This document shows, one piece after another, positions 10,200 through 44,669 of a stretch of DNA of 64,000 nucleotides. Origin of the DNA: Dicyema japonicum (Eukaryota; Animalia; Dicyemida); assembly GCA_011109175.1 (NCBI GenBank), contig RDEW01000002.1:12299-76298 (forward strand), given 5' to 3'. Below the pieces are notes generated by a model that had not been told where the DNA came from, did not search any database, and was given only the letters and a program-made list of their open reading frames with translations. The first letter of the stretch is position 1. Each line of letters opens with the position of its first letter. Position numbers and translations under genes: made by a program.

Positions 10200-10401
10200 T
10201 ATACTAAGATACCAACTTAACATCGAGTATATACTTTTTTTGTTTTATTTGATTATTAACAATGAATTCATTTTAGATAATTAACTAATTTTACTTAGAA
10301 TTGTCTGTTCTAAATAAAAAAGTTTTAAGGGGTCGATTAAATAATAGGGGGGTCGAAAAAAGTCAAGGGGTCGACGAGCAAAAAAAGGTTGAGAACCCCT
10401 G
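10200..10401 (+). mobile_element. Right end of a Buster-type hAT transposon
   Basis: TIR aggttgagaacccctg at 10386-10401, ggggtcga subterminal repeats, and flanking 8-mer atttaaag fitting the NNNTANNN target pattern. Confidence 0.75.
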
Positions 10402-11575: not shown

Positions 11576-11639
11576 ATTTGTGTCTATCATTTTGCTGTAT
11601 GGGTTAAATCAGATCAGTTCTGAGAAAACACACATGAGA

Positions 11640-13689: not shown

Positions 13690-14118
13690 TGTACAATATA
13701 TGCTTTGATAATACAATATAGATCTGAAGATCGTTATGCACAATTAGATGGAAGAGGTTTGAATATAATTTAATTTAGCTAATGACTGTAATCCATCTAA
13801 CGATCCAAATACTCCAATTTGGTATTTTATGAATGGAAATCGACTCAAGGCTATATTAAGTGGGATTATTGAAATCGATGTTTATAATGATAAAAAGAGA
13901 AATTTGAATAACGAAGCGGTTAAAAAAAGTCGTCAAAAGACAAAAATGGCAGACGATGCCTTAAAATTTGAGTTGCAGCGAGTTCAGGTTACATTAATGT
14001 AATATCCTGTTAGGCCCAATTGGATAAAGCAACTGAAGATCTTGAGAAGGCCAAGATTAAAAGACACGTGGTTAAGGAATTCTACTTTAATCTTATTGGG
14101 AACCATTATAACCCTTAA
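13690..14118 (+). CDS. Chimeric spliced ORF: LAMP-like exons fused in frame to a C/EBP-like bZIP domain (5' end lost at the N at 13684)
   Basis: Introns 13757-13778 (22 nt, phase 1) and 13988-14013 (26 nt, phase 0) give TIYALIIQYRSEDRYAQLDGRANDCNPSNDPNTPIWYFMNGNRLKAILSGIIEIDVYNDK-KRNLNNEAVKKSRQKTKMADDALKFELQRVQAQLDKATEDLEKAKIKRHVVKEFYFNLIGNHYNP*. Confidence 0.6.
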
Positions 14119-21821: not shown

Positions 21822-22989
21822 CTAAAGCATTGGAATATTTTCGAATGGTTCTACTATATTTCTTCGACGTTTGATGTAGATAACCCAAGTGACCCCAATA
21901 ATCATAAGTACCACTATAGTGATGGAAATTACCAGGAATTTATAATTATGTGAAACACGGAACATTTTCTTTCTTTTACTTTCAAAACATCCAGAATCTA
22001 AATTTACCATAATGCAAACCATTTCCAATGAAATTTAAATTCATATCATTCCGAAAAAATTGAGTTTTTAATGGTGAAAATCTAGCGCGAAGTTTAGGGA
22101 AATTAATTTTAAAATTTTACAGTTAAAGTAATTTCCTACGTCGACATAACTCGGATTATAGGATACCATGTCCAAATATTTTTGCTTTTGATAAAAGTAA
22201 TTTTCGAAATATAATATTTATTTTGTTTTAATTTAAAAATAAAAAATATTTCAAAATTGTCTTGATTTATATGCACCTTAATTCCATCGTTTTCAATATC
22301 AATTTTTGGACTTTGACATTCTTTAAAAAAATATTTAATTGTCCTCTATGATCAACTTTTAAATTTTACATATTCACTAATGTAGTCGATTTCAATATTT
22401 CCAATTAATATAGCCTTGAGTCGATTTCTATCCATAAAATACCAAATTGGAGTATATGGATCGTTAGATGGATTACAGTCATTAGCTAGATTAAATTATA
22501 TTCAAACCTTTCCATCTATATGTGAATAAAGAGATTTAGTTCTATATTCTATTATCAAAGAATATATTGAGACAGAATAGTCATTTCCCAAACTGATGGA
22601 AGTATCTCCACATCTGTAATATTCTCCATTTTTGATTTCTGTGATGTTTTTTGTATTTATGTAGGTTTTATTATCTTTGATGATTTAAAATAAATTACTA
22701 GAGTTTAATTTAATTTTCAATATTATGCTATAAATTTTTTAGATGGTTGAATGAAAAGTTCGATAGTTAAATTATTTTTCTTGAATTGATGCTTGGGAGA
22801 AAAATCGTAAGTATTAATTTTGATTCTGAATTCATCACAAATTCTCTACAATTGCAAATTATAAAATACATTCTCATGGATATTTTCAAAAAGCCATCTC
22901 CATATAATTTCATACCATGTATACCAATGTTAGTTGCATTATTTGATGAAAAACAAAAATATTAACAATATATTGAATGAACACGTCAT
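21822..22989 (-). pseudogene. LAMP-like type A membrane protein, copy 1 (frameshifted)
   Basis: Hydrophobic N-terminus, two Cys-flanked domains, 22-nt phase-1 intron at 21998-22019 (FIGN|DSGC), TM segment FLVISITIVVLMIIGVTWVIYI and a basic stop-transfer motif. Homologous to 38377-39612 and 43322-44551. Confidence 0.65.
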
Positions 22990-23099
22990 ATAGATTTTTT
23001 AGGTCACCTTTTAATGAATTTAGTTTAATATATATTAATAAATTTTGTCATTATTTTTAATTAAAATAAATCATATTCTTAAATATTTGATTCTAATTT

Positions 23100-23330
23100 G
23101 TATTACCGCCGTTGAGACGTCTGGTTCCCTAGCGCCTGCGACGCTGGAATTCTTGAATCGTCTAGGAATTGGAACGTTACACGAACAGGAGTCCTTCGTA
23201 AGCGCTGCTGGTCATTTGAGCGAAACTCGCTCGCCATTCTGAGAGAAAATAGCCACGCAATAATAACAACATGCCACGCAGTCAGGGCAGCCGCTATATA
23301 ACTGTTTATTCTTTTTTTTCTTAATAAAAT
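23100..23330 (+). mobile_element. CRE 3' fragment
   Basis: AVETSGSLAPATLEFLNRLG. Confidence 0.7.
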
Positions 23331-23384
23331 TTAATTTGTATCATAATAACCATGAAATCACGAGAAAGAGATAAAAGTTATCGT

Positions 23385-23670
23385 CTAATTAAGTGATCCC
23401 GGTGTCCATACTAGTCCTTTTCCTGTGGTTAGTTTTGAAGACCTGGATTAATCTCCACAGCGGGGAAGGTTTCTTCTCATATCTCGGGCAGGCGTCCATA
23501 TATAGTTTGATGTGAGGCCAGAGGAAATGGTCAGGGGACTTTGCCATCTTGAAGAAGTCCCGGTGACGTTCCGTAAGGTATTCCATGATTGGGGCCGTTT
23601 AGTGTTCTTCGTACCAACGAAGTGGACGTCGTTTTCGAAACTGGGATCACCTAAGAGGTTCGGTTCCTTA
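23385..23670. mobile_element. Two short LINE 3'-end fragments in opposite orientations
   Basis: Both end in gggatcac(t/c)taa, like the LINE ends at ~35110, ~35605 and ~45955. Confidence 0.45.
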
Positions 23671-23762
23671 AATGTTATATATAAATATTAATTAAATATT
23701 AATTTAATTGTAAACCAGAATTTGAACCAAATTAAATAAAAATTAGTAAATAATTAAACAAA

Positions 23763-26419
23763 TTATCTCATCCTCTTGAAAAGATCTTCACGTCCATTTT
23801 GCAAATCAGTAATAACCGAAAAGTCGGCAAGTGAAGACAAATCACCAAAGTCAGTGGCTCCTTTAGCAATCTGCCTCAAAGCCCGTCTAATAATCTTCCC
23901 AGAGCGGGTCTTTGGCAACGACTTAGCCATCTGGACATACTCAGGGCAGGCAAAAGGCCCAATAGTACTACGAACTAGCATATCAACACCCACAACCTCC
24001 TGTCTTGATCTCCTGGATTAACTCTGGTGTCAATTCTTCATTCTAAAGGTCTCTTAAAAAGTCACCTGGTGGAGAGTAACAAAACAGTAGACACACTCCC
24101 CTTTTATGTCGTGTGGGGCAGTCACAGCTGCTGCTTCGACGACACTGGAATGCTGCACAAGGACAGCCTCTATCTCTGCAGTGCTTAGAAGATGCCCAGA
24201 GACATTCAACATATCGTCTATCCGTCCTGTTATCCAGTAATATCCGTCATCGTCTCTATGAGCTCCTATGACGTTATTGATGGTGTCAAACCGTCCCCAG
24301 TGATATAATAGCCAGGAAACCGGTCAAAATAGGTACTCTTGAATCGCTCATAGTTCCCGAATATATTCCTCATCATTCCGGGCCAGGGTTGTTTTATGGC
24401 CTAAAAAATCAAAGGAATCACTCACCAAATATCCGTCGGCCTTTCCCTCCAATTCTTGTCCTTCATCGTTAAGAATAGCGGGGACGACACCGAAAAACGG
24501 TAAGGTCTACAATATTGACACGTGGGTTACAGCTGAGCCAGGTTTTGTGTTGAAACAAGGAAAAGGAGTCAAAATTTGTCCCCCCTAAGGTTCAGTCTGC
24601 CAAAATACAGTTTCCGTCTGCCAGTAAGTGTCCACAATAGCACAGCGTGAATTCCCCACTGTTTTATGATACCACTTCCACACGTCTGGGTTAATGGGCT
24701 CTCCAGCAGTGCCGATCACTCTGAGGGACTCACGTGTGCTACTACTGGCAATAAGATAGTCAATTACTTCAAAACATAATCATCCCCGTAGGCCATCAGG
24801 GACCTAATGGCTGTGGGAGCTGTGTAGAACTGATTCACGTTATACTTGTCGCAGATCTTCCAGAACCTACTGGGATCAGGGTACGTCATCACTCCCTCAA
24901 ACTATGACATCATCACAAAGTACACCAAAACAGAAGTAGCACAGTTAAGAAGAGGACCATAACAGATGTAACTGTGTCCTGTAACCCATCCAAGGTCAGC
25001 AGTGCACCAGTAAATATCATCTGGGTGGTAGTCGAAGACATATTTGAACGTAGTGGCCACATACAGCATATAACCACCGATTGTGTGAAGAATCGCCTTA
25101 GGAACGCCGGTGGATCCACTAATGATCACTTTATGTGTGGAATACCTTGTATGTAGCATAAAGAGGGGATCTTCTGCATCAAGCCAAATGGGGTCACATG
25201 CAGAGTTTGCTTGGGACATTGCATCCTTCCAGAAGACATCAGTTCCCGGATTAATTTTGTACTGAAATTACAAATTCCACAAACAGTAGAGTTAGAACCA
25301 CATGACTCAGATGATTGTAAATGTTCTTTGATAATGACTTTATCAACGGAAAATCCCCTAAAATAACACTTCAAAGGGAACTTTTCACTATAAATCTGGA
25401 GAGCCTCGTCTAATATGCTTTTTAAGTTTATTACTTTATTTCCCCGCCAAAAACCGTCTAAAAAATATTAATTATTTTGTAATAATAAAAATAAATAATT
25501 AAATTATTAGAGAAATAATTAGAAAATTTAAAAAACAATAAAATTAACTTTTAACTAATTTATAATTAGTTTAGACAATAAAATACATAAATTATCGATA
25601 TTGTGACGAACCTGCGATTATGACCAATTTTGGTTTTGCACTTAAAAATCTGACGCAAAGGGAGTTAGCCGAAAACCGGCAAACTAACAGTAAAGCAGTC
25701 AAACTTACAATTATTGAGTGTACAACGCCAATTCTAGCACACGCCAACATGGCCACTATCAGTTCTGGGATCATGGGCATGTAGAGCGAAACGACATCTC
25801 CTTTCTTTAACCCTAAAAGTTTGAGTCATTCAAAAATGCCGTTAAATCGCAGAAAAATCAAAAATATCTAACCCATTGATTTCATAACGTTGGCCATCTT
25901 GCAAACACGTGTGTGCAACTCACTATACGAGAGCTTGGAGGAGTCTTTGGGGTCATTCCCTTCCCTTAAGTCAAATTTTATTATAAACCAGTAAAATACT
26001 GTTTTATCACCGTTTCCATTTAGAATGTGCCTGTCCAGGCAGTTATAGGTCATGTTTGTCTGGGCTCCTTTGAACCAGCTTATTAAAATAGGGCCGTTTT
26101 GGGCGTCGAAATTCCATTCAGCTTTGCAATTGGGATAGAATGTGTTCCAATAAAATTGGTCGGCTATTTTTGACCAGAATTTGGCCGGTTCTGCTACGGA
26201 TTCTTCGTACATTTGCCTGTATTCCTCCATTGAAGTCAAGTAGCTCTTATCCATCACGTATTTTGAGGGATAATAAATCTCATGTTCTGCATGCTTGATG
26301 GATCCGTCGTGAGAAGTTCTGACGAATACTGAGGGAGAAGGTCTCATCATACTAGAACTAAATAAGTTTGTTCTCGCGCAACAACGAAATTGCAAAATTG
26401 TTTTTGAATGATTGAACAT
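23763..26419 (-). CDS. ACSS2: Acetyl-CoA synthetase (ACSS2-like), apparently intact, 15 introns
   Basis: The spliced frame contains [70 protein letters not shown] and [12 protein letters not shown]. Thirteen introns are 22-27 nt; the others are 60 nt (25813-25872) and 154 nt (25458-25611). Confidence 0.95.
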
Positions 26420-26599
26420 TAAATAATAAACGAAAATCAGCGCTTAATTTCAAAAATATTATTGTTTTTTAAATTAATTTTAAAATAATCTAATTTAATA
26501 ACTTTTTTTTTGAAAAAATAATATCAATTTATTAACAAAATGATAAGGACAAAACATTATTTAGCTCCCTCTCAGAATTGCGAGCGAAATTCGCACAAA

Positions 26600-27830
26600 C
26601 AGCCAGCGGCGTTCGCGGAGATCTCCAGTGCTTGAGGTGATCCGGTTTCCAAGACGTCGAAAAACTCTAGTGTTAAAGTTTTTAATTTTAAAAAAATTAC
26701 TGAAAATTAAAACAATAAAATTTTATTCAAGTTGCATGCCTCGTTGTGATTCTAGTGGTCGATATACAAGACTCACTATCAAACAAAAAGTGCAAATATT
26801 GCGTTATACTGACGACAACAACTTATTATCATGACAAAGAATTGCTGATAAATTTTCCTTTCTTGTTTAAAGTGAACATTTTCCGAGGACAGTTAACAAC
26901 GCTATCTTAAAGAGTCGTGAGTAAATTTTGGAACAATTTCAAAATAAAAATTCCTCAACAAAAACAGTCAAAAAGTTAAATTCCTATAGCTTGTTGAGTG
27001 GATGGATTCTATGGAAGCAAAAGGTATTCTTAATGTTTTTAAATTTTAAGGTGCATTGTTGAACAATGCATTAATATCCAGTAAAGCAGAATTCTTCGCT
27101 AAGCAACTTTCTCTTGACTATTTCAAAAACTCTTATGGATTTTTTTCCAAATTTAAGAAAAGGAATGGATTTTGCTGAGGAAATTACATTGACAAATTCA
27201 CACTGAGAAAAGTGTCGATATTGAGAAGTTTCTCAAAGAATTTCAAGAAATTTCAAAGTCATATACCTGCGATTGATTTATAACCTGGATGAAACAGGGA
27301 TTTTTTACAAGTTTATTCCATCCAGACGTATTTGCAAGACTCCGTTCGGAAGAAGATATAAGAACTTTAAGGATAGAGTATCTTTTATGTTATGCACAAA
27401 TATGTCTGGAAATCATAAATTAGAGCCTTAATTGATTGGAAAATCAAAAATGCCAAAATGTTTCAAAAATATGATTATCGATGTTCTGTTTCGTATTACA
27501 GTTCAAAAGATCGTGGATGACCGGATTATTTTTTATTAACTGGATGATAAATTTCGATAACCTTTTGAGAAAAGAGAGGAAATCAATTTTGCTCCTTATA
27601 GATAATTGTCCTTCTCATTGCTTGTCATCGAATTTGGAAAAAATTAAAATAATGTTTTTCTAAAAATGCTACAGGATTATTACAGCCAATAGATTTGGGA
27701 ATTATTAAAACATTCAAAGTCCACTTTAATAGACACAAATTGTAGTATCTTACTGGATTATTGAAAAAAAAAACATGCCAGTTTATGAATCAAATAAAAA
27801 TTTGATTTGTACACATAAAGTCAGATAAAT
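26600..27830 (+). mobile_element. Tigger/pogo (CENP-B-like) transposase, degenerate
   Basis: RLTIKQKVQIL (psq HTH), YNLDETGIFYK, KDRVSFMLCTNMSG, SWMT, LLLIDNCPSH and LQPIDLGIIK. Confidence 0.85.
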
Positions 27831-27849
27831 AAGTAATTTTAATCAAATT

Positions 27850-28440
27850 AATTAGATGATCCCAGTTCCCCTTTTGTTTTGTAATCATCGAAGAATCATA
27901 CCGCTTTTTGGAAGTATCTTCGCTTGTATCTACACGGAAAGTAGATGGGATGTGGATATCTAAGGAAAGGCCGTTCTATTTGGATGGAGGTTTTCCATTC
28001 AAGTTTGAGGTTAGGATTGATTTCGGAGTCAAACACATTTTTTGTAAGTAAACTCCTCGAGAGAGAAAAAGTCTTACGTCTTTCGAGAATCAATAAAAAT
28101 CATCGCCATGTTCATATTGGGGATGGAGTAATAAAGCCGGTGATTTGTAGTAGAACTACCAAGTCGGGAGCCATGTTGGAATAATTGTGACAAATGTCGG
28201 GTTTAATCTTCCCTTCAAATGAAGAAAACGGTTGCTAACTGGAGAGTGATGATCATAAGCGGACACTCCCTGAGATTCGTTAGATGTATCTGATGTGAAG
28301 TCACGAGAAATTAAAGAAAAAGAAAACTAAGAAGGTAATTCAGGGCACTCTCAGCAACCACTTTATCTTCGCTCGGTGTTTTTCACGGAGTCTCAAAAGC
28401 TTCCATTAGGCCAGAGGAATTTATTTCAAAAGATAATAAA
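27850..28440 (-). mobile_element. Degenerate LINE endonuclease region; partial duplicate at 32390-32720
   Basis: 27880-28210 is near-identical to 32390-32720; the PTF...MAPDLVV segment resembles the end of APE. Confidence 0.45.
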
Positions 28441-29354
28441 TGCCACGTGTTAGGCCATCAGAAATAACATCAACTAGTAAACATGGTTGCAAAAGCAGAA
28501 AAACCTTCCAATATCACATACTAGTCTATCCAGAACCAATGGAAGGGGAAGAAAAACGTCCATCCCTTGCAATTGTCAACCAAGGAAAGTAGATGGCTTG
28601 AATACTCTAGTGAAACGAAGAAAGAGACTTATTTACTTTAATAGATATATCCCAACCAATAAGATTTTTGTGATCCTAACCACAAGTAACATTGTAATTA
28701 GTAAAAAATGGTGTGATACATCAAAAATTAATACTTTTGTATAAAAAATTAAAAATATACAGATAATACTTGATTATTATTAATAATTGAATCAAGGTCA
28801 TAATAATGGAGATTCGTTTAACGCAACGTCAATTTTCTCGGCGTGGACTTGATCCAAAATACAAGGACTCTACTGAAGGAATACGGGGATCAACTAATGG
28901 TGTCGACTTTCGTTATTTTATTTCTATTGCCTTTATTTTCGACAGAAACATAGGTCTCATGCAATGTATAGCTGTCATTTATAGGTTGTTCAATCTATAA
29001 GGTAAGAGTTGCAATTAAATGGTCTCTTCCTTTTGTGTTTAATGGAACTTTCCACCATACTGCTTTACTGCAATTCATTTTCGAATCCTGAACTTTATTA
29101 AGTTATTTAACATACAAAAAAAAATAGGTGTCCGCTAATCCCAGCCTCCTTAAGCAGCCGTCTCAATTTTTCTCGGTGTTCCTCCCAAGAACTGACTTGT
29201 TTTCTTTATGAACGAGACACTTTTCGGAATAAGGTACATAATTAAAATTTAAACATTTTTATCCATCATTTGAGATATTTTTAATAAATTTTATTAATTT
29301 AATAATAATTTAATATTTATAAAATAACCTATAAAAAATAAAGATAACCTATAA

Positions 29355-30476
29355 ATGACTTTATCACTGTGTGGATATGAATTATTAATTATTTTAATAA
29401 GTCCTGTAATTCCATATCAAATGGTTTATACTAATGTTGAGTTAAATCATTTAAATAACTACAACATTGCATGTATGACTAAACGTGTAAATCCCTGGAA
29501 TGCTCGAAATAAAGCACTTTTAAGTGCACACATAGATGTAACATATGTGAAAGATTATAAAGTTTGTAATTTTTATTAATATTAGAATATGAATTTCGTA
29601 TTTAATGAGGAAAATTCAAACTTATATAGAATTGAATTAAATGATAAAATTGTTCTAATTTTATCATCACATGATATTAATTTATATTTTACGTTCATTT
29701 TGAAACCTGGAAAGATTTATTTACTTGCAAAAATAGAACTATCGATTAGTAACTATTTTATTAATTATCAGATCATTCTGATGTTCACACAATTACACTT
29801 GATCAACAATTGATTCCAGAAAATCATGACTATGAATGTCAAACTATATTTAAAAATTTTTCTTCAGATGTTTCTCTCACTATTTCTTGTTTAAGGACCA
29901 AAATAATCAATAATAGAGATACTATCAAATTTAGTTCTATTGGTTGTTGTACTTATTTATTTTAGGACGATACTGTTTGAATTCTACAGATAAGACAGTC
30001 TATCGAATTATTATCAAAACAGAAAATAAAACTAAACTGTCTACCCAAAAAATGACAATTCCAAATATTAAACCATCATATAGTAACCGGAAAATTAAAC
30101 TTACCTCTACAGATAATATTAAACCATCATATAGTAACAGGAAAACATACTTTCCTCTACAAAAAATATTAAACCATTATATAGTAACCAGAAAATCATA
30201 CATTCCACTACAAATAATATTAAACCAGCATATAGTAACAAGAAAATCATACATTCCTCTACAAAATAATATTAAACCAGCATATAGTAACAAGAAAATC
30301 ATACATTCCTCTACAAATAATATTAAACCATTATATAGTAACAGAAAGTAATAATATCCATTCTTTACTGTGTCGTTGATTTCCTGGCTTTGGTCTTGAT
30401 AATCATAGTAATTGTTTTATACCATAGAAGAGATCAATTTAGGTTATTAACAAAAACTAATTCATTGTCTGGTTAA
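29355..30476 (+). CDS. LAMP-like type B protein: signal peptide, one LAMP-like domain, 17-aa repeat stalk and an out-of-frame TM/tail
   Basis: Introns 29562-29585 (24 nt), 29749-29771 (23) and 29943-29965 (23) join the ORF-track pieces into one frame ending at TAA 30349-30351. A TM segment VIISILYCVVDFLALVLIIIVIVLY and tail HRRDQFRLLTKTNSLSG* follow in the -1 frame. Confidence 0.7.
30067..30348 (+). repeat. 51-bp coding tandem repeat, 5.5 units
   Basis: Units start at 30067, 30118, 30168, 30219, 30271 and 30322 (lengths 51, 50, 51, 52, 51). Confidence 0.95.
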
Positions 30477-30739
30477 CTTATTATTAATATGGGAATTTTT
30501 GGTTTGTTTGATGTTAAATGATATATTTTATAGTCTCTTGTATAATTTTTTGATGAGTCGACATTTATTTTTTGTGTTTTAATGACATATAAAGTTGACC
30601 TATTTAGAATTTGAATTAATTTGCTGGATAATCATTAAGACTTAGTTTTAATACAACAAATGACATTTGTCACATAATAGAGAATGATATTACTATGAAT
30701 GAAGTAGATCATCTCTATAATTAGTATGCGTTTTTACGT

Positions 30740-31700
30740 AGGAATCCACAAATCTATTTTTCCACTATTTGCTTTATTGGGGCAAGGATCCCGTCTATTC
30801 TCAGTCTCAAGACGACGTTTAGGCTAGGGCTAACTTTATGGCAGATCTTCAAGACTTATCTAGTCCTATAATATCCTTTCTTTCTTTATGGATAGATACC
30901 ATGCTTCGCACCCATACAAAGCTTTTGTAGGATTAATTTATAAAAATGAAGAGAAAGGTCTTCGCACTGATGGTTAGCTTGATGTTCTCCAGAAATGAGC
31001 CTTCCTGGTCGACTACTACATCCAGCAATCGAAGCGAACGAACTCTTGGAATTCCTAGCGTATAAGGTTGTATGTGACGGATTTGTATACGGCAGATTTC
31101 CATATAGTTTGACGTCTCTGTTGAGTGTTTCATCCCTCTCCGGACACACTGGTCTTGCACTTGTCAATAAATATCCTGAGTCTTCTCTCGGAGAGCGACA
31201 ACCTCCCTGACATATCCATGATTAGTATGTCATCCGCGTATATTAATAGTTAGTGTTAGGGTCCGAAGGAGTTGGGAAGTCTGATAAGATGTTGAACAAT
31301 AGGGGGCTATAGACAGATCCCTGCGGAACATTCCTCTTTAGTAAAACTTCTCCGGATACATTTCCTCCAAGCGCACTTGAGAAATCCTTCCCGTTCGGAA
31401 GTACCTTAGCCATTTGAGAAGTTATTTTGGAACAGCCACAAGCCTTGACAAGAGGGTTTCATGCCAGACTCTATCGAAGGCCTTGGATAGGTCCACGTAT
31501 ACCATGCTTACTTTTTTCTCGAGTATCGATTTTCAGTACTTCCAAATGCATTTAATGGAAGCAATCCGTACAAGATTTTCCGGGCCTATCCATCCTCGAA
31601 GGTTCCTTGTGTGATAGTTTTGGTAGTCTTCCAAGTAGTAGATTTCCTATATTATGGAATGATAGATTCCTTTAAAGTTCTTGTAGTCAAAAAATTACTA
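30740..31700 (-). mobile_element. LINE family A-related RT fragment
   Basis: Minus strand has LIYADDILI, GVPQGSV and KLYGNLPY, paralogous to 9540-10090. Confidence 0.75.
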
Positions 31701-33029
31701 TGAACTTTTAAGTTTTTTTAACTGAAAGTACTTTTAAAAGAAATATTCATCACTGCACATATTATTTATTTGGAACTTTGGGGTCACCAAAAAAAAGTTC
31801 AAATATAGTCAAACAGTTCGGTGATTTCAGTCCCCGCAATAAGCACAGTAGTTATCCATTATATCATGCTTTCTTGGAAAAGCGCTTTATTTTGGTTGAA
31901 CAAAAGATCGATTGGGGAGAGATCTCTAAAAAACCGAGTTTCTTTAGCTCGGAAAAATAGAAAGAAGCGGCATTCTACTTTTTTCACATTATAGGTAATG
32001 ACTCTGACGTTCATGTGTGTCTTGAGAAAGTCTTGAATAATATTCTTTTCAGCTAGACAGATCTTTTAGTTAGGATTTCTCTGTTTCCTAATGAATTAGG
32101 ATCCTGATGATACCCTTATGAAGCTTAATGAAACTCAAATCCACTTTTCGAATGTCTTATCAAGCGAGTAATGAATGAGTCTGGTTGTCAATTCCTTGTC
32201 AACATTTTTTCAATCAGATCAGATTATCTTTGTAGTTCTTTAATCTCTTGAGTTCTTACATCCGTGTCAAGTCATCACTCTATTGATCATGGGAAATAAT
32301 GTAGGAAACAGATGGCAATAAAAATACAGTACAGGAGGAACTATCAAATGTGGTAGAGATTCTTTTATAGTACAGGAGGAACTATCAAAATAATCATCGA
32401 AGAATCATACCGCTTTTTGGAAGTATCTTAGCTTTGTATCTACATGGAAAAGTAGATGGGATGTGGATATTAAGGAAAGGCCGTTCCATTCGGATGAAGG
32501 TTTTCCATTCAAGTTTGAGGTTAGGATGGATTTCGGAGTCAATAACATTTTTTGTAAGTAAAGTCCTCGAGAGAGAGAGTCTAACGTCTTTCGAGAATCA
32601 ATAAAAAGTCATCGCCATGTTCATATTGGGGATTGGAGTATTAAAGCCGGTGATTTGTGGTAGAACTACCAAGTCGGGAGCCATGTTGGAATAATTGTGA
32701 CAAATGTCGGGTTTAATCTTCATAAAAACTAACTCCTCTAACACTTTTGGAGTAAACATGTCAGAGATAACGGTGAGTTTGTAACTTATTCGTCCTTAGT
32801 AAATCTATTAGAATATTTATTTATTAAAACCAAAAATCAATGAAAAATTGAATAACTACATAGCCGTCAGGTGATTCCGGCCGCCTCGACTAGCTATCTC
32901 ATTCTTGCTAGGTGTTTTCCCGAGTTCCAACGCATTTCCGGATTGGGAGGGGGTTTCTAACTTTTTAGAAGATTTAATGAAAATATTAGAAATATAAAAA
33001 AAAAGCAAATGGGAATTGAATTTTATTTC

Positions 33030-34235
33030 GATAAAATTTAATACTTCATTATTTAAAACAGAATTCCTTTGACTGATGTTTTTTGACCAAGGATTCGATA
33101 TCTGGCTCTATTTGTGTTATTTTTAAACGAATATCTCTCTAATGGACACATCCAATCTGTTTCGTTCTTTATTTACAATTCGACGTAGAATGCTAAATCC
33201 GCATTCAACACAGTATGATGTCGGAAAATAGAGCAGCAATTGTGCTATTCCTGTCCACAATTTTGGATAACTCTCACTTTCATATTTTGCCAAAAAATAA
33301 CAGGTGATTGTGAATCATTATAATATAGTTTTAATTCTCGATTGAATTTTAACATAATTAATTCCTCTTGAATATTTCCTTTTTGTTTTTCTGGATTAAT
33401 CAGACAAAAACGGATTAATCATCCAAGATGAAATTTCTAATTCAAGAATATCTTGGAATTGAAGAATCAAATATATGACTTTCGTCAATTTGAAGCGAAA
33501 AAATAGTATTTTTAAGCCTTTCACAAAAAATATGTTCAACAATATCTGCCATTTCGTCAATCCTGCGGCGAATTGAATCATTGCTAATTGGTACGGAATT
33601 TAAAATTTCATCGAGATTTAAACCCATAAGATCTGATAGAATCACTGATAGATCGTTTGATGAGATTTTTACCAGAAACATGAGAACTCTCATTTTTGGC
33701 AATAATCATTGCAATTTTATAGGATGCAATTAGTCCTAAATATAATTTAAAATTACTACAACTATTGTTTCTTTACTAATATTTGTAAAAACAGTGTCAA
33801 TCGTTTTTTGCTTACGAAAAGAATCCTTTAATTCTTCAAAATACTCAAATGGTTTATTTTTTTTATCCGAATGTATTCTCCTAAAATGATCCAACAATTT
33901 GGACAGTTTCATTGCATCATTTGATTGATAATGACTTATTAGACAGTAATAATATGGTCTATTATCAAAATAATTTTTTATAAATCAAAATGCCAAATAT
34001 TCATTTTTATATTGACGAATTTTTAATGTAGAAAAAAGACTCATACAAGAACAAAAACAAGCATGGTAATTTTAAAAATTTTAAAGAACAAAGGTTTACC
34101 ACTTTAAAAATAAACTAACTTAATTTAAATTGAAAAAGATTAAATATATTAAATTTATTTTCGACCCCCTTACGATCGATCTGGATTGATTTTAGACCCC
34201 TGGGGGTCGAATCGACCCCAGGTTGAGAACCCCTG
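33030..34235 (-). mobile_element. Buster-type hAT transposon: 5' TIR plus degenerate transposase
   Basis: TIR at 34220-34235 with flank atttaaaa. Motifs SNDSIRRRIDEMAD...FSLQIDES and the dimerisation motif YPKLW...FPTSYCVECGFS. Confidence 0.85.
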
Positions 34236-34469
34236 ATTTAAAATATTTTTTTTCGTAATAAAGTCAAATTTAGTTATTTTCATAGATGATAAGTTACCCA
34301 ATAACTATTTTTAAAATTATTGATTATATTCTGAAATTTGCCGATTCCCAAATTTGCCGCAAAAAATGCTGGAACCAAAAATGGCATATTTGTGAGAGTT
34401 TACTGTATATATTATTGCTAGTTCTTTTATATATTTATCACACTCTCCACTATTGGATTGTTGGCAATC

Positions 34470-35190
34470 GACTTACGATTTCTGCAACCAAGTCCATCTG
34501 TTCCACTTTCACTTCGGACCGTCGTTCTAAGGATGAACCGAGTATCTTTATTGGTCCCACTCGGATTCCAGTGACAAGGTCCCCCACTGTCCTTGGAGTC
34601 AAGGACGACAGTCTACTCAATTTTAACTCCCACGCAGATGACATGATTACCAGGGGCCTCCAGAAAGTTAACGTTTTACGCGCCCTTGTCCGGAGGACCA
34701 CGAGGAACATCGACTTTTCCGTTTCTACCCTCTACCAACAAACAATCGCGCCTGCCGTTGAGTATGCTTCCGTTGCATGGAGATTCGCGCTATCGGAGTC
34801 TATCGTCCAATGAGTCAACTCGATACACCAGAAAACAATCAATATGCTTTTTCCACGTAATGGATCAACAGTCGACCCACTACTCATGGAACTAAGATCC
34901 GTAGTCGTGGCTCCGGATTTCTTCGCGTCTGTGAGGAAGATGGAAATCCGCTTCGCCTGATCCTTTCCATGGCAAGAGAAAACCGATTGGATAAGAAATT
35001 CCCCTCCCCGATCGGATTCCTCTGCAAGACCGAGAGAAGGCTCTTCCGGAAAGTATTGGGGATGATGGAAGATCACAGACGTCGATTGGCACAATTGATT
35101 GCGAGGACTGGGATCACCTAACTGTTTGACTCTTTTGTCTTTCTTTATCGGTGTTCCCGGGGATATTAAAATAAATAAAAATAAAAAATA
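34470..35190 (+). mobile_element. LINE ORF2 C-terminus with 3' UTR and A-rich tail
   Basis: VLGVKDDSLLNFNSH...LYQQTIAPAVEYASVAW; ends ...cccggggatattaaaataaataaaaat. Confidence 0.75.
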
Positions 35191-35199
35191 TATTCATCG

Positions 35200-35615
35200 A
35201 TAAACCGTTCCAACATGGTTTCAAAAAGGATCGGTCCACAACGAGCTCTCTCACATCCCTGACTAACTTTATTCGCTCTGGATTTCTGTGCAAACCAAGA
35301 CACCAGAAACTGTGTTATGCTCACTGGACGTCGCAAAGCTTTTGACTCTGTGCCGAGGAAGAACTTAACATTGAAAATCTACCAATCAGATATCCCTGAA
35401 AACCTCAAACGCTGGCTAATAAACTTCTTTAACAGACGAAGAGGTAGAGTGTGCATATCAAATCACCGACGCCCATGGAGAAACTAATCGAAAAAACAAA
35501 AATGGACACCAATGCCAAAAAAAAAGTGCTCGTCTACAACGAACTTGTGTAGGCTCAAGGGATCAACACCGAGCAAAGATAAGAGCCTTGATCCAATTCG
35601 TCGGGATCACTTAGT
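35200..35615 (+). mobile_element. LINE RT fragment
   Basis: QHGFKKDRSTT...SLTNFIRSG and a degenerate AFDSV; ends gggatcacttag. Confidence 0.6.
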
Positions 35616-35679
35616 TTAGTTTTTTCGGTTTAACAGTAGTCTTTGGAATAATTTAATTAAAAACTTCATTCGACCTAGT

Positions 35680-35900
35680 AGCTCATGTGGTGCTATGTGG
35701 CTAATTAATTGAAGATCTATGTTTGCTTTGTCTTATCCTTCTCTACCCTTTCCTACTAGATTAGCTTTATGTGATCCACCTGTCTTAGGTGACTCCCAGT
35801 GCCAGACTGGCACGAAAAATAATCAGTTGCTCTTTCCCTTTCTATTGGTAAGGTGTCCACAACTGCAAGGAATTGAGGTCTTTTATTTTTTATGCAGGTT
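35680..35900 (+). mobile_element. SINE-like family 2, diverged partial copy
   Basis: Shares gtggctaatt...tgtgatccacctg..taggtg...cccagtg with 46078-46404 and 55497-55825. Confidence 0.65.
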
Positions 35901-36039
35901 CCAGATAATGTTATCAGTAAAAATATTCCATAAAAAAATTATAAAATCAATACTGTCTACTTTTTCCATAAAGCCAATTTTTATTTTCTAGGTCACTCAA
36001 TGCAAAATATGATTTTTACACGATTCGGTAAAACTTCCA

Positions 36040-38130
36040 GCTTGCTCTTGCCGATATTGATAAGGAGGCGATCTATGCAGCACAGGCGTACTCGATACCT
36101 TGTAGAACAAAGTGTTTGTATAGAAGCTCTAACGATAGGCGGGAGGATACTGGAGAGTAGTTGAATGCCTTGAGAATTCCAATTTTCTTTTGGATCATCG
36201 CGGTTGCTAGGTCCACTTGATGGGTAAATGTGAGTAGGGGATCCAGCATGACTCCAAGAATTGAAAGGGTCTTCTTAATGGGAAGCGGGGAGTCATACAA
36301 TGTTATTCGTGGTGTTGTCCGTAATTCTTTTCGTGCTGAGGTAAACGTCATTACATTTGACTTTCCTGGTGATATATTCAGACGGTTCTTCAGTAACCAA
36401 AGACCCATCTGGTTTAGTAGGTCTTGCACGAATCGTGTCGCCTCGATTCTTCGATGTTTCACTGAGACCACGAGATCATCCATATACGATAGAAGAATTG
36501 TGTTTTTGGTGGTTGGGAAAGGTAGGTCAATGATGAACATGTTGAAGAGCATTGGAGACAACGGTGATCCTCGTGGAACTCCATTTGGAGGTATCGCGGT
36601 TTTGATTTTTGGTTGTTGCCACCACTTGGCCCATTCGACTGTTAATGAAGTTACCCAACCATGACTTAAATTTTGTGTGGATCGACGTGGTAAAATTTTT
36701 TGTTGTAAGGATCTTCCGGGATATTGAGTCAAGAGCCTTCTCCACATCCACTGAGACCAGCACGGTTCTCTCGTGTGGATTTTAAGTATTCAGACCGTCA
36801 GAAATGAATTGAACCAGTTTTGTTAGATGAGTTGTTGTTGAGTGTCCTTCGCGGAATCCGTGTAGAAAAAATGATAGAGTTATGAAAGGACGGATCTTGA
36901 GAAAACCAGTTTTTCTAAACTCGTGATAAGGCGCAGATGAGATGGATACCGGGCAATTTGTGGTTTGTTTTTTTCAGGATAGGGTGTATCAGAGATTTCT
37001 TCCATATTGACAAAATTTGTCTCGTTTATTGAGAGGTTGAAGACTTGTGTTATTGCGGCCGTCGTGGAAGGACCCAGGTGTTTCAGTTCGAGAATGGAGA
37101 TGTCATCTGAACCGCGGGACGACGAGTTATTCATTTTCCTGATTACTGAGTGCACCATTGAATGGTCGAAGAAAGTTATGTTGGGACATTTATTCCTTCG
37201 ACCATTTCCAGAACGAATATCCAGGTCTTTTGAATATGGTTTATGACTAAAATTTACATAGTACTTCATAATGTCATTGGGAGTTGGATTTGGCTCTCGA
37301 TGTCCAATTAAATGTGGAGAGCACTTCTTGAGCCTCCTTATCGATTTCCATAATACAGTGGGGGAAGTATTATTTGTAGATTTCTGAGCAAGGCTTCCCA
37401 ACGTTATTTGTTGTGTTTTGTGATGTTCCGTGTGATTTCTTTGTTCAGTTTTGATATTTTCAGTTACGTCCACTGATTGTCTTTCGAAATTCTTCAGTTT
37501 ATTTCTCGTTTGGATTAGATCTCGCGTTTCAGCATCAATTGGGTGTGTTGGGCGTTGAGGACGACCCATCGGAATGCATCTTTTGCGAGCTTGGAGTATA
37601 ATATCGTTGAGGTATTTGAGAGCAGCGTCGATAGATCCGAAATTCACTACCCTGAAGGCCTGGAGGTTTAGTTCTGTAAAATGTGTGAAGGCGGGCCATA
37701 TTGCCTTTGAGAAGTTCACATTGGTTCTCAAAGTGTTCATTAACTTATGTTTTTGTGGATCCTCATGAAGATCGGGTTATGGTCAGTATGTAAGTCGTAT
37801 ATAACATCCCATGAAATAACAGCCGCAAAAGAAGGAGCAGCGAAAGAAATGTCTGATAAAGTAAGGGAGTCGCGTCCTTGTGTGTTTACTTGGATTATTG
37901 AGAATGATCAAGTCGTCAAAAATGTGTTTTCTCGAGAGTGCTTTTAAGAATAATAATGTTATGACAAAGTCCACTTTATGGTCTGCAGGCATCGAGCACG
38001 TAATGGAAGTTATCTCTCAAGATTGTGATCCCAGTGTTCAAAAAGAGCCATCTCGTCTTTCTTGCATCACCCTTCCGGAGTCTGCAAGCTGCACGATTAA
38101 CCTGGTTAATTAGATTTGAGGGGCAACCAA
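36040..38130 (-). mobile_element. LINE family B-like ORF2 (APE plus RT), frameshifted
   Basis: SSRGSDDISILELK, VDVEKALDSI, GVPRGSPLSPMLF, SYMDD and ILGVMLDPLLTF. Confidence 0.9.
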
Positions 38131-38376
38131 AGAGATCTTAATAATTTTATTTTTAGATTCACATCACATCCTCAGACTGATTATGTAAAATACCACGTTA
38201 AACCAAACTTATATGTGATTACTATCATGTGTCCAGGACATTTTGGTCCATTTTAGTAAGAAACAAAGTAGAGTTTAAATAAACATAACTTGACTATTCA
38301 ACGCTATAAATTAAATTTTCTATTGTTATAAATTAAACCTCATATTCCCAAACATGTCAAACATTTTTAATTAAAA

Positions 38377-39612
38377 TTAAATTGGCATATATTCAGACAA
38401 CTTTGTATGCCTAAAAAGATTGATTACAGCTCCAATAAGTCCAATAATCATGAATACTACCACAATGAGGGTAATTTCTATTATTTTAGAATTTTTTGAA
38501 ATAAAAGAATTATCGTTTCCTTGAATTATTTTAAAATCTTTTGAAAGAGTGAAAAAATTTTTTCTTCTATGCATAACTTTCGAAACACTCAGAATCTAAA
38601 TTTACTATAAATGTCACCATTCCAATGAAATTAAAATTCGAATCATTCCGATAAAACTGAGCTTTTAATGATGAAAATTTAGCTCGAATTTTAGGGAGAT
38701 GTATATAAAACACTTTACAATTAAAGTAAGTTCCGATATCGATATAATTTGGATGATTATTATACCATGTTCCAACATTTTGGCTTCTGAAGCTAAAATT
38801 AATTTCCGATATATAATATTTATTTTGTTTTAATTTTAAAATAAAAAATATTTCAATCCGGTCTATCTGTAAATGTATTTTAATTTTATCGTTTTCAAAA
38901 TCAATTTTTGGAGTTTGACATTCATGTGAAATATGTTGATATGTCCGCTATAATCAAATTTAAAATATTACAAATTTATCAATGTAAAAATCGATTTCAA
39001 TTTTACCACTTAATATTGCGAAGAGTCGATTTCCATCCATAAAATACCAAATTGGAGTATCTGGATCGTTAGATGGATTACAGTCATTAGCTAGATTAAA
39101 TTATAAAAAAAACCTCTTCCACTTATAAGAGTATTACAGGACTAGCTCCATATTGTATTATCAAAGAATATATTGTGACAGAGTAGTCATTTCCCAAACT
39201 GATGGAATTATTTCCACATCTGTAATATTCACCATTTTTGATTTCTGTGATTTTTTTTGTATTTGTGTAGATTCTATTATCTTTGATGATTTAAAATTAA
39301 ATTACTGGAATTTAATCTAATTTTCATTATTATGTTATAGAATTTTTTAGAAGGTTGAATAAAAAATTCGAAATTTAAATTATGTTTCACGGTGTGATAC
39401 TCGAATGATAAATCGTAAGAATCAATTTTGATTCTGAATACATCAATTATTCTCTATAATTGTGAATTATAAGATACATTCTCATGGATATTCGTCAAAA
39501 AACAATCTCCATACAATTTCATACCATGTAGATCAAACTTAGCTGACATTTTTGTGATGAAAGACAAAAATATTAACAACATAAAAATATTGAATGAACA
39601 CGTCATATACAT
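38377..39612 (-). pseudogene. LAMP-like type A membrane protein, copy 2
   Basis: After the 24-nt intron at 38948-38971, a ~100-codon open exon reads RTYQHISHECQ...IGTYFNCKVFYIHLPKIRAKFSSLKAQFY. TM segment IIEITLIVVVFMIIGLIGAVINLF and C-terminal EYMPI*. Several 1-2 nt indels. Confidence 0.7.
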
Positions 39613-40169
39613 AATTTAGGTCACCATTTAATGAATTTAGTTTTAATATATATTAATAAATTTTGTTATTATTTTTAATTAAAATAAAATCATACTCTTA
39701 AATATTTGATTTTATATAATTATTAGGGCAACATAAGTAAAAAACTCAATTTCAATTCAGAGTTAAACTTTAGTCAAAAATAATGATTCATTTAAAAAAA
39801 TGTCAAAAAAAGTTTTCTATATAAAGTTTTTAGGTCATAGAATCAACTTTTTAGATTTTCAGTCAATTTTTAAATAAAAATTTAAAATCGTAGCCACTTT
39901 ATTTAATCAACAATAAAAAGTTAATATTTAATATCAACAGCCTTCCTCTCTTGCCTGTTTGCCAACCTTCTCATGCAGGTTCGATTCTGGTTGCTGAAAC
40001 AACTCCGAGAGCGCCTTTTCCAATTGAGCCCTCTCCCATATGGCATCTCCGGCTCTGACTCTTATACTCCAGTGTCAGGCTATTTAGGGTTCGCTTTAAT
40101 ACTGTTCACTGTTGATAGGGCTGGAGTTCCTATCTATGCCTAAATAAAAATTTAAATAATGTAATTATA

Positions 40170-40526
40170 TCATAATTTAAAGTCCAGCGGATATGATCGA
40201 GTGGCTGTTACCTCTGACTACTGCAGGGATATCCTTTGGAAAAGCCACTCGGTTTCCCGACGCTCCCTCGAGGCTTTGGTCAATAGACACCCAAGTGCTC
40301 TAAGGAAAGAGACCGTCTTGGGGCCAAAGACTCCGCTCGTCTCGACGACCACTGGCTGTACATGGAAACGGTTTAGGAGGCTGCTGTATTTTTTATTTTT
40401 GAGTTTTCATATAAACGGGCGGCCTCTCCCGCTTTCATTGCCGACCTCAAAAGTTTCGACTGGAAAAGCTGTCAGTACAGGCAGCATCCCAAATTAAGCA
40501 TTTGCCCCGAGAGAAGGGGAAGACAG
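40170..40526 (-). mobile_element. CRE 3' end
   Basis: Minus strand LIWDAACTDSF...VVVETSGVFGPKT...EWLFQRIS..VVRGNS. Confidence 0.8.
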
Positions 40527-40689
40527 TAATTTAAAGTATCAAATTAAATTTAAAATAATCGGCTTGATATTTCTGTCCTATTGTAACAAATTTTTAACTA
40601 AATTATACAGTACCTAAAAATAAGCTTTCCGATTCAAAAAAGCTAAACACAGAAGCACTCTTCACGAATAAATGTATTCACAAATAAAA

Positions 40690-41490
40690 AACAATTGAAT
40701 ATTGTTCTAATTGATTTCTTCAGAAATTTTGCAACAGACGTAACGGAATCATTTCTGCTCGCAAACATTCCACTCTATAAATTGAGGAATCGAGCAATTA
40801 TCAACTTAATCGAAAGTATTGGGCATCCACTTCCTTCAGAGTTTGCTTGCGCATCCATATGTAGAAATTTTAGCTCAACAAAGATATCCAAATAATTAAT
40901 TTAATTTCAAATAAGAAAGTTAGTTTGAATAATTTAATTTTTAAGGTTTTTTTGATTGTGGACGAAATTGATGTGGGATAAAAAATTTGTTAATTGTCTA
41001 GTAGATTGTATAACAATTGATTCCTTTCCGCTGAAGGCTGTTTCTTACTATGCCTGCAAATCTGTTAAATGTTATTCAAATATGCACACCTTAGAATGAG
41101 ATTCTTTGCTTATTAAAAGAGCAAAAGAATGTTTATTTAATGGACAACTTCATGAAGATCTAACGACGATAATACCATAATATTCACCTTTATTACATTT
41201 GCTTGATGATTTAGAATCGACCAATTTTACTATAAATAAAGCATACATTTATTTGAAAAAATTGGATATAAAAGAAGACGTATGTGGAATAAAAAATAAT
41301 ATTAACAATAGAATGTATTCTAATGATTTCACAAAAATAATGAATTTCGATGATTATTCCATTTCACCTTTAGATTATTCTTTGTTGATTGAATGTCAGG
41401 CTACATCGTGCGCAGTGGAACGATCATTTTCGATTTTTAATAAAATCTTATCCAAGAATAGGAATTATAAAGCCTATAATTTAAAATAAT
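40690..41490 (+). mobile_element. CGGBP1-like hAT transposase remnant
   Basis: FLLANIPLYKLRN...LPSE at the N-terminus and ATSCAVERSFS at the C-terminus. Confidence 0.7.
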
Positions 41491-41679
41491 ACTTAATTGT
41501 GAATAAATGATGAATAAAATTACTTTAAATTTTCATAAGTGTAGTTTATATATGAAAATAAAGCTGTAACTAGTATTTTTTAGGTGAATTTTTAAAATAA
41601 TAAGATCAAGTAAATCGACTTTTTAAGGACAATTTTTATTTTTTAAGTCAATAAATATGTTCCCTAATCATTATATTTA

Positions 41680-42365
41680 TTTTGTCCAATATTTTAGGTT
41701 AATGACATTGATCGCTTTAAAAAACGAAGGTTCAGCAAAAAAGCAGAATTATTTATATTACTCGATGGATCTTTATATCTTAAGGAGTAATTTAATAACT
41801 ACAAGCTCGTTATAACGTTTGATGATGATGCTCTTATGACTTTGCTTGCAGAAGACTTACATCGGCAAGCCCATTGCGGACAAAACATTTTGGAAAAGTT
41901 ATGTCGCGAACGTTTTTTCGTGATAAAGCGTGAGATAATTAGAGGTGTGGTCCAAAATTGTGAAGTCTGCTTATTCTCGTCAATTCTGAAACAATCTGAT
42001 GATATTTGTCATATTTTTTCTAACTCCCCGAATGAATATTGCAAGTAGATTTTATCGACTTAAAAAGGTATTTCCTATTGTTTAATTTTGAGATTTAAAA
42101 GCTGTAATGATTCATTTTCTTGGTTACTCACTGTTATTGACGTGTATTTAAAATTCTCTTATAATCTTGTTATCGTAGAACAGGAGGATGGATCAGAATA
42201 TAAAGTTCATAAATAAAGACTTAAAAATTGAGATAAATAAAGGAAATTAAATTTTTTTATTAAAAAATTGGGTTATTTAAAAAAATTAAAAAAATAAAAG
42301 AAGACAAAGAGCTTAATGACATTGATCAAAGAATCTGTAACCGTATAGGGAATTAATGTCTATCT
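41680..42365 (+). mobile_element. Ginger/KRBA2-like integrase remnant
   Basis: HHCC zinc motif LHRQAHCG...VVQNCEVC. Confidence 0.65.
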
Positions 42366-43321
42366 GAAGAACAGCGGCCGTAGGCCGCATAGGGAATTTG
42401 TGTCTATCAAGGATGTAGTTTCATGCGAGATTTATAATAATGTTCTATCTATGTTAGTTATTTCTCATGATATACTTATTATTTCTCTATTTAAGTTGTT
42501 TTGTAACTTTTATTAGTAGAAAATATAATTATTTAATTTATTAATTAAGAATATAAAAAGTTAACACGTTGCTGGTTAAAAAAAGAAAGAATATAATACT
42601 TAAATTTACTAATTTAAAAAACGCTTTAAATTAAATTAACAGTCTCCCCAAAAAAACCGTAAACACAGGTCATCTCTGAAGATATGTGCCAGATACATTA
42701 GTGCGATTTTTGAACCTCGAATAAGATTTTCGATAATTCCGTCAACATTGCACATTTTTCCTTCTAACAATAAGGGAATTGGCATACGAGGAATTATCCC
42801 GTAAGCAAGCTTTAGAGCAAAATTTCGCGTTTTCTCAATTATTATGGCTCTCGTGAAAGTGCTAATAATAATAATTATAAGTATGTTGTGGTTAATTAAA
42901 TTAAAGGGGCAAACAAAAAGATCTTAAAAATTTATTTATCTCTTTAAACGTCTTGTGATCAAGACATTCTATGCAGTCATAGATATTTTGTTTCTGCTTT
43001 ACTGTCTCACTGCAGTATTTGAGATCAAACATATTTGTTTTCCAATCTAGGCGGTTAGAGCTAACTAGACTTAATTGATTTTTTAGTTGCGAAATTATTT
43101 TTTCTGTAATGCGAATTATTTTTTAGATTAATACCACGTTAAACCAAATCTACTTATCATGTGATTCCTATCATGTGTCGAGGACATTTTGGTCCATTTT
43201 AGTTGAAACAAAGTAGAGTTTAAATAAACTTAACTTTACTATTCAACGCTATAATTAAATTTTCTATTGTTATAAATTAAACCCTCATATTCCCAAACAT
43301 GTCAAACATTTTTAATTAAAA

Positions 43322-44551
43322 TTAAATTGGCATATATTCAGACAACTTTGTATGCCTTAGAAGATTGATTACAGCTCCAATAATCCAATAATCATGAGTA
43401 CTACCACAATGAGGGTAATTTCTATTATTTTAGAATTTTTTGAAATAAAAGAATTATCGTTTCCTTGAATTATTTTAAAATCTTTTGAAAGAGTGAAAAA
43501 ATTTTTTCTTCTATCTGCATAACTTTCGAAACACTCAGAATCTAAATTTACTATAAATGTTACCATTCCAATGAAATTGAAATTCGAATCATTCCGATAA
43601 AACTGAGCTTTTAACGATGAAAATTTAGCTCGAATTTTAGGGAGATAAATATAAAACTCTTTACAATTAAAGTAAGTTCCGATATCGATATAATTTGGAT
43701 GATTATTATACCATGTTCCAACATTTTGGCTTCTGAAGCTAAAATTAATTTCCGATATATATAATATTTATTTTGTTTTAATTTTAAAATAAAAAATATT
43801 TCAATCCGGCCTATCTGTAGATGTATTTTAATTTTATCGTTTTCAAAATCAATTTTTGGAGTTAGACATTCATGTGAAAAATGTTGATATGTCCGCTATA
43901 ATCAAATTTAAAGTTTTACAAATTCATTAATGTGAAAATTAATTTCAATTTTACCACTTAATATAGCGAAAAGTCGATTTCTATTCATAAAATACCAAAT
44001 TGGACTATTTGGTCGTTAGATAAATTACAGTCATTAGCTTAATTAAATTCTATAAAAACCTCTTCCATTATATTTGCATAAAAAGGACTAGCTCCATATT
44101 GTATTATCAAAGAATATATTGTGACAGAGTAGTCATTTCCCAAACTGATTTTAGTATCTCCACATCTGTAGTATTCTCCATTTTTGATTTCTGTGATTTT
44201 TTTCGTATTTGTGTAGGTTTTATTATCTTTGATGATTTAAATTAAATTACTGGAGTTTAATCTAATTTTCATTGTTATGTATAGAATTCTTAGAAGGTTG
44301 AAAACCTCGAAAATTAAATTGTGTTTAGTGTTTTCATACTTCAATTTATTTTTGAGAGTACAATAATTGATTCTGAATACATCACTTTTTATCTATAATT
44401 GTAAATTATATAAGACATTCTCATGGATATTCGTCAAAACACAATCTCCATACAATTTCATACTATTTAGATCAACCTTAGCAGCAATTTTTGTGATGGA
44501 AGACAAAAATATTAACAACATAAAATTATTGAATGAACACGTCATATACAT
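43322..44551 (-). pseudogene. LAMP-like type A membrane protein, copy 3
   Basis: MYMTCSFNNFMLLIFLSSITKIAA signal-like start, GEYYRCGDTKISLGNDYSVTIYSLIIQY and C-terminal EYMPI*. Contains an internal stop and 1-nt indels. Duplicated with flanks (~42900-44650 versus ~38115-39720). Confidence 0.7.
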
Positions 44552-44669
44552 AATTTAGGTCACCTATTGATAATTTAGTTTTAATATAAATTAATAAATT
44601 TTGTATTATTTTTAATTAAAATAAAATCATACTCTTAAATATTTGATTTTACATCATTATATTTATTTA

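Follow-up and report, generated by a model that had tools for sequence, protein, structure and literature searches.

The lysosome-associated membrane proteins (LAMPs) are lysosomal housekeeping proteins normally present in one to a few copies. LAMP-1 and LAMP-2 (Pfam family PF01299; structures 5GV0, 5GV3 and 8ATH) are type I membrane proteins with two luminal beta domains, a short Pro-containing hinge, N-glycan sequons, one transmembrane (TM) helix and a short tail ending in a tyrosine motif (Y-x-x-hydrophobic, the adaptor-binding signal of LAMPs); each domain contains two disulfides and ends with a Cys-Cys loop of about 37 residues. LAMP-3 (DC-LAMP, 4AKM), CD68 and LAMP5, which are also low-copy, have a single LAMP domain next to the membrane, followed by a TM helix and a short tail, but their N-terminal part is mucin-like and not a second beta domain. 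ATP6AP1 (Ac45; 6XBW chain s, 8XLI chain c), a single-copy accessory subunit of the V-ATPase, carries a LAMP-like luminal domain. Three damaged paralogs of a LAMP-like gene family are described here from a 64,000-nucleotide stretch of the Dicyema japonicum genome (the window: GenBank assembly GCA_011109175.1, contig RDEW01000002.1, positions 12,299 to 76,298 of the forward strand). They are probably decayed members of a six-exon family specific to Dicyema.

Intact members of this family were compared with LAMP-1 and LAMP-2. The common features are the type I arrangement, two luminal domains with a short Pro-containing hinge, a putative Cys-Cys loop of LAMP-like length at the end of each domain, N-x-S/T sequons, a single TM helix (a hydrophobic stretch of 19 residues towards the C-terminus), a short tail that carries a tyrosine motif at its end and, from structure prediction, a LAMP fold in the membrane-proximal domain. 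In contrast to LAMP-1 and LAMP-2, the Dicyema proteins fall under every curated threshold of sequence similarity and have fewer sequons (5-9 per intact protein), an Asn/Pro hinge of only about nine residues and an extra, variable stalk of 20-45 residues before the TM helix; many members end in E-x-x-P-M-L in place of the tyrosine motif, domain 1 could not be identified as a LAMP domain, and about 100 copies are present instead of one or two. Four cysteines are kept family-wide in close and distant members, one pair in each domain (with spacings of 38 and 37 residues), and the second Cys loop that each LAMP-1/2 domain has was not seen in the family. No sequence similarity to ATP6AP1 was detected, and nothing in the family hints at a role in the V-ATPase.

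In the proposed scheme, the family would comprise about 100 genes, each made up of six exons and five introns of 21-25 nucleotides (nt) and encoding a type I membrane glycoprotein of about 350 amino acids (aa), in which a signal peptide precedes two luminal domains of all-beta structure. A single Cys-Cys loop, 37-38 residues long, would close each luminal domain, with the closing Cys just after a 22-nt phase-1 intron. Domain 1 would be followed by the Asn/Pro hinge, and domain 2 (the putative LAMP fold) by the stalk, the TM helix and a tail of 13-16 residues ending in Y-x-P-hydrophobic or E-x-x-P-M-L. By analogy with LAMPs, adaptor complexes may direct intact members to membranes of the nutrient-absorbing cells, either endocytic or lysosomal ones or those of the recycling surface, where the proteins may form a glycan coat. 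The family would evolve by duplication, gene conversion and decay, the window copies being decayed members.

Exon structure and tiny introns

The assembly searched contained 67,542,437 bases in 377 contigs, in which the window is C112:12299-76298. A whole-genome DNA search gave 53 matches, and the 13 near-full-length ones were aligned. At five sites, GT and AG bounded a segment of 21-25 nt in all 13 aligned members; the length of these segments shifted by single bases, and the flanking exons were constant in length. The same five positions, with GT and AG, were found in 12 distant members, in which exon 5 is only about 33% identical. Because both the GT...AG ends and the positions are kept in the 13 close and 12 distant members, the five segments were taken as introns (A-E). 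The exons of the family measure 105, 148, 168, 119, 331 and approximately 180-230 nt (exons 1-6), and introns C and E, each of about 22 nt and in phase 1, lie directly before the domain-closing Cys. The first-pass annotation, made from the letters of the window, had noted such an intron before the closing Cys of domain 1, and it is now found in both domains.

With this six-exon model, intact proteins of 350-366 aa were obtained from 9 of the 25 members, and the model was considered validated because these translate without a break. Three are close members (C112:300322-301500, 366 aa; C375:11334-12386, 358 aa; C33:4023-5101, 350 aa); the other six, out of the 12 distant members, are open throughout and encode 350 aa. 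An exhaustive search for GT..AG paths of 18-45 nt was rejected, as it 'rescued' nearly anything in AT-rich DNA, and was replaced by the intron positions conserved among paralogs. All three window copies have five GT-AG introns of 22-25 nt (Table 1).

The D. japonicum genome is known for introns shorter than 30 base pairs (bp) (Lu et al., 2019, PMC6736024). In the acetyl-CoA synthetase gene (ACS) beside copy 1, GT-AG introns of 24, 60 and 25 nt were present at the junctions read. When introns and synonymous sites were compared in one family alignment (L001-L015), the introns were not more diverged (p 0.02-0.23 versus pS 0.07-0.31), which suggests from the sequence comparison that nearly every base of these tiny introns is under constraint. 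Frame changes in this genome should therefore be checked for introns of 21-25 nt before a gene is called broken. In one member (L054, C135:208094-211396), intron C measures 35 nt compared with 21-23 nt elsewhere, and the surplus resembles an internal duplication of about 13 nt.

The likely start codon, conserved in the family, is found 30 nt 3' of an upstream ATG, at 39582 in copy 2 and 44521 in copy 3, and is lost in copy 1. The upstream ATG, which had been proposed as the start, sits in a block 10-50 nt 5' of the conserved start codon that is present in all 13 close members (alignment columns 60-105), also holds a TGACGTG core and has equivalents 5' of copies 1 and 3. This block is a candidate shared promoter or 5' untranslated region element.

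Damage in the window copies

Three paralogs had been reported on the minus strand of the window, and these were recovered at the same places: the three-way alignment of copies 1-3 gave a mean column identity of 89%. By self-BLAST, copies 2 and 3 are 91.8% identical in DNA over 1.5 kilobases (kb) (38189-39723 versus 43130-44660), and copy 1 (21978-23095) is 83% identical to copy 2 and 81% to copy 3. Exon and intron boundaries were projected onto the copies from the 13-member alignment, and lesions were scored against intact members.

It had been claimed that every copy carries indels. Five of the apparent interruptions per copy are GT-AG introns; after splicing, frame-breaking small indels stay in all three copies of the assembly as it stands (approximately 7 in copy 1, 2-3 in copy 2 and 5-8 in copy 3). 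Copy 1 has ATA in place of the start codon, a 2-base deletion near 22944 and single-base deletions near 22886, 22733, 22510, 22160 and 22111. Copy 2 has a single-base deletion near 39138 followed by an in-frame TAA, another near 38622, and a 2-base deletion near 38570 that creates a TAG. In copy 3, deletions of 4, 1 and 1 bases are found at 44303-44281, single-base deletions near 44068, 44013, 43568 and 43384 (the last within the TM helix) and a 2-base insertion near 43763. No nonsense substitution in the proper frame was found in copies 1-3 (about 350 codons per copy).

The deletion near 38622 in copy 2 and that near 43568 in copy 3 are one common lesion. It lies upstream of intron E, which keeps GT and AG in both copies, and it makes retention of this 22-nt intron frame-preserving and stop-free, adding seven codons before the closing Cys. 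In copy 3, the frame with intron E retained goes on through the stalk and TM helix (open reading frame 43369-43566). Intron E may thus have become coding sequence (exonised) in the common ancestor of copies 2 and 3.

The damage could be an assembly artefact, with at least one copy, most plausibly copy 2, being intact and expressed and the gaps reflecting errors of long-read consensus or haplotype merging. Several observations speak for such an artefact. The assembly was made by combining contigs from Platanus (Illumina) and Falcon (PacBio RS II) (Lu et al., 2019, PMC6736024), and no polishing step is mentioned in the assembly methods text searched. Every lesion is a small indel, several lie beside runs of A or T, nonsense substitutions are lacking, and copy 2 would be down to two lesions if intron E were retained. 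ACS, for which a complete lack of indels had been claimed, appears to be affected itself. Its frame was examined at four junctions. The intron of 25 nt at 25684-25708 (minus strand) has canonical ends and the twelve bases after it encode a four-residue motif of PDB homologues, but the conserved residues after this motif are shifted by one base and would come into frame only if the T-run at 25672-25675 were one T longer. This looks like a homopolymer assembly error, the alternative being a non-canonical intron of 24 nt. Single-base errors may be present in the D. japonicum assembly. Because of the merged assembly and the apparent loss of one base in ACS, copy 2 could be intact in reality.

An artefact is nevertheless an unlikely explanation of the damage as a whole. 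Nine of the 25 family members are free of lesions over approximately 1.05 kb each. If all family lesions are counted as errors, the mean is about one per gene and the Poisson probability of at least seven, as for copies 1 and 3, is <1e-4; the same arithmetic gives 0.26-0.08 for 2-3 lesions, as in copy 2. The lesion common to copies 2 and 3 was inherited or copied and is not a random error, and genuine nonsense codons are found in other members (L003, L008, L012 and L058). In addition, the Nei-Gojobori ratio of non-synonymous to synonymous substitution rates (dN/dS) among the window copies is 0.81-0.89, without a third-position excess. Pseudogene status is almost certain for copies 1 and 3 and probable for copy 2, and all three window copies are presumed to be non-functional.

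Probable relationship to LAMPs

The spliced model was searched exon by exon, such that each exon scanned covered about 75% of a domain. Exon 5 encodes 110 aa, approximately three quarters of the membrane-proximal domain 2. Among 24,736 Pfam models, PF01299 (Lamp) was the best family for exon 5 in two of four close copies (E 0.016-0.063) and the commonest match in a diverse set, being found for 15 of 20 members with a best E of 1.7e-4. All these matches were below the cut-off: the two fully quoted ones scored 13.6-15.5 bits, compared with a gathering score of 27.2 bits, and the proteins are not PF01299 members by score. A six-frame scan of the genome gave nothing, and a profile of exon 5 from the 20 members found no LAMP among PDB sequences, with one chance match. 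A word-index protein search with the exon-5 alignment gave nothing credible. The full HMMER search of 1.84 billion representative proteins returned two matches, both long Thr/Ala/Ser-rich repeat proteins aligned in many short stretches, which were rejected as spurious. As these profile searches gave nothing credible, the family has no detectable relatives outside the D. japonicum genome.

An AlphaFold model of exon 5, built from the 20-member alignment, was all-beta with a mean predicted local distance difference test (pLDDT) score of 61 (71-85 over residues 11-77). With Foldseek, the top matches among 350,542 PDB chains were LAMP-1 (5GV0), LAMP-3 (4AKM) and LAMP-2 (5GV3), at probabilities of 0.98-1.0 and template-modelling scores of 0.47-0.56. 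Two aligners (350,542 and 48,161 chains) ranked LAMP-1/2/3 and ATP6AP1 at the top with this partial model, which is thus predicted to form a LAMP-type beta-prism. Because the modest fold scores agree specifically with the Pfam result, domain 2 probably has the LAMP fold. Look-alikes of both domains in the ESM Atlas (scores of 0.85 or lower) were generic beta proteins and were set aside.

The LAMP relationship proposed in the first-pass annotation for both domains is therefore supported for domain 2 and not shown for domain 1. In one member (L005), intron B (24 nt) has no stop codons, so that exons 2 and 3 can be read together as a 113-aa piece of domain 1; this piece had no Lamp match in Pfam and its model was poor (pLDDT 55), and the exon 3 alignment is almost without depth. 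Comparison of the exon 3 and exon 5 profiles with hhalign detected no similarity between the two domains (probability 3.5%). The matching Cys-loop lengths and the intron before the closing Cys in both domains argue for a duplicated domain.

The architecture that had been described was found in the sequences: the N-terminus is hydrophobic and signal-like, the Cys of domain 1 is followed by the Asn/Pro hinge, a TM helix is present, and the tails of copies 2 and 3 end in Y-M-P-I. An ending of the Y-x-P-hydrophobic type, at or one residue from the C-terminus, is found in six intact distant members, in L007 and in these two window copies, and conforms to the adaptor-binding signal of LAMPs; to judge from the sequences, the single TM helix and short tail thus agree with the LAMP arrangement. 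In L004, L011 and copy 1, Asn or Ser replaces Tyr, and the copy 1 tail is of the E-N-I-P-M-L type. The ending of these three is reminiscent of an acidic dileucine-type signal.

The family could instead be unrelated to LAMPs, as a lineage-specific beta-sandwich surface protein with a resemblance that is convergent or too generic for common descent. This is rather improbable, given that Lamp recurs as the best match among all Pfam models, that two aligners placed the few known LAMP-fold entries on top of such large sets of chains, and that the overall architecture agrees with that of LAMPs. The LAMP-like reading is retained here, in which intact members would be glycosylated type I proteins sorted by their tyrosine motif to the endocytic or lysosomal membranes of peripheral cells. 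All nutrient uptake takes place by endocytosis in these cells, in an octopus-kidney parasite of about 30 cells and 5,012 predicted genes that feeds only in this way (Lu et al., 2019, PMC6736024).

Family size and mosaic evolution

The proposed amplification was borne out genome-wide, with at least 114 matches to exon 5 and at least 132 to domain 1. Most of these exon matches are open, and many are clustered on contigs C112, C1, C223, C24, C375 and C168. If the LAMP-like reading is true, an approximately hundred-fold expansion of a LAMP-fold gene would be among the largest gene families in the genome and a lead to the construction of the absorbing surface. No mention of the family or of LAMP was found in the genome paper, its supplements, the stage-expression paper or a full-text search for dicyemid with LAMP. 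In the genome pipeline, sequences occurring in more than 30 repeats were masked ahead of cDNA mapping (Lu et al., 2019, PMC6736024), and the family may have been overlooked for this reason.

The dN/dS ratio was 0.53-0.76 among intact members, and this range, the values for the window copies and the fraction of intact members agree with the birth-and-death evolution suggested earlier. The check for mosaic tracts was positive. Copies 2 and 3 diverge by 12.7% 5' of intron D and by 2.1% 3' of it (maximum chi-square 56, with 0 of 2000 permutations as high; no break in an intact-pair control, p 0.27), and to judge from the sequences their 3' tract (exon 5, intron E, exon 6 and 3' flank) is recently homogenised. 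The nearest relative also switches along all three window copies: in the 5' half, copy 3 is nearest to the C375 members, and exon 2 of copy 2 is nearest to copy 1. This mosaic pattern is the trace that gene conversion or recombination between paralogs leaves, and it fits birth-and-death with conversion. The contribution of the window is three members that are both decayed and mosaic, together with an intron that may have been exonised and a reason for caution over indels in the assembly.

A further proposal, which is improbable, is that in dicyemids about 100 fast-evolving, converting LAMP-fold genes have taken the place of the usual one or two LAMP genes and coat the endocytic surface, the sole feeding organ of the animal. 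The broken copies would still be sequence donors, and the coat would diversify by conversion and not be a static lysosomal shield.

The VSG, var and msp2 families of parasites also have a large copy number, clusters, many broken copies and mosaic tracts, but their folds are unrelated and the Dicyema family has neither expression-site logic nor telomeric placement, so that the likeness is one of evolutionary mode only. That the broken copies are a silent archive, from which gene conversion transfers segments into a small number of expressed genes so that the surface coat varies, like the VSG genes of trypanosomes or msp2 of Anaplasma, is very improbable: the tract linking copies 2 and 3, the switching relatives, the many pseudogenes beside intact genes and the high dN/dS would fit, but gene conversion is common in any clustered family, the intact genes are numerous and dispersed with no single expression site, the C-terminal sorting motif points to endocytic traffic, and the cephalopod host is not known to possess antibody-type adaptive immunity.

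Flanking DNA and feature coordinates

The window is AT-rich (26-44% GC in 2-kb steps), transposon-rich and clearly eukaryotic. The duplicated unit consists of the gene with 100-200 bp on either side and not a larger segment. No terminal inverted repeats were found around it, and a transposon carrier is not indicated because the matches were only AT-rich chance ones. The features are listed in Table 1.

Table 1. Coordinates of the family members and associated features in the window (position 1 is the first base of the window)
Feature	Position	Strand	Description
Copy 1, most decayed	21822-22971	-	Exons 22870-22971, 22699-22845, 22508-22674, 22370-22485, 22020-22345, 21822-21997
Copy 1 introns	A 22846-22869, B 22675-22698, C 22486-22507, D 22346-22369, E 21998-22019	-	
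Copy 2, least damaged	38377-39582	-	Exons 39478-39582, 39306-39453, 39114-39280, 38972-39090, 38618-38947, 38377-38595
Copy 2 introns	A 39454-39477, B 39281-39305, C 39091-39113, D 38948-38971, E 38596-38617	-	
Copy 3	43322-44521	-	Exons 44417-44521, 44251-44392, 44060-44226, 43920-44037, 43564-43895, 43322-43541
Copy 3 introns	A 44393-44416, B 44227-44250, C 44038-44059, D 43896-43919, E 43542-43563	-	
Homogenised 3' tract, copies 2 and 3	38189-38960; partner 43130-43910	-	Exon 5, intron E, exon 6, 3' flank
Conserved upstream block	39593-39630	-	10-50 nt 5' of the start codon; 13 of 13 close members
Stray family fragment	13693-13894	+	End of exon 3, intron C, exon 4; 84-90% DNA identity to copies 1-3 (self-BLAST)

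The stray fragment was also found by tblastn with exon 4 as the query (13781-13885). It lies beside one copy (12325-12888) of a 560-bp inverted duplication, which is 93% identical to 29792-30353 and contains a tandem repeat region. Transposon-like segments are repeated at 85-98% identity (7422-11588 versus 40529-42364 and 49861-52305); one of them lies between copies 2 and 3, and the spacer between these paralogs therefore consists mostly of inserted repeats.

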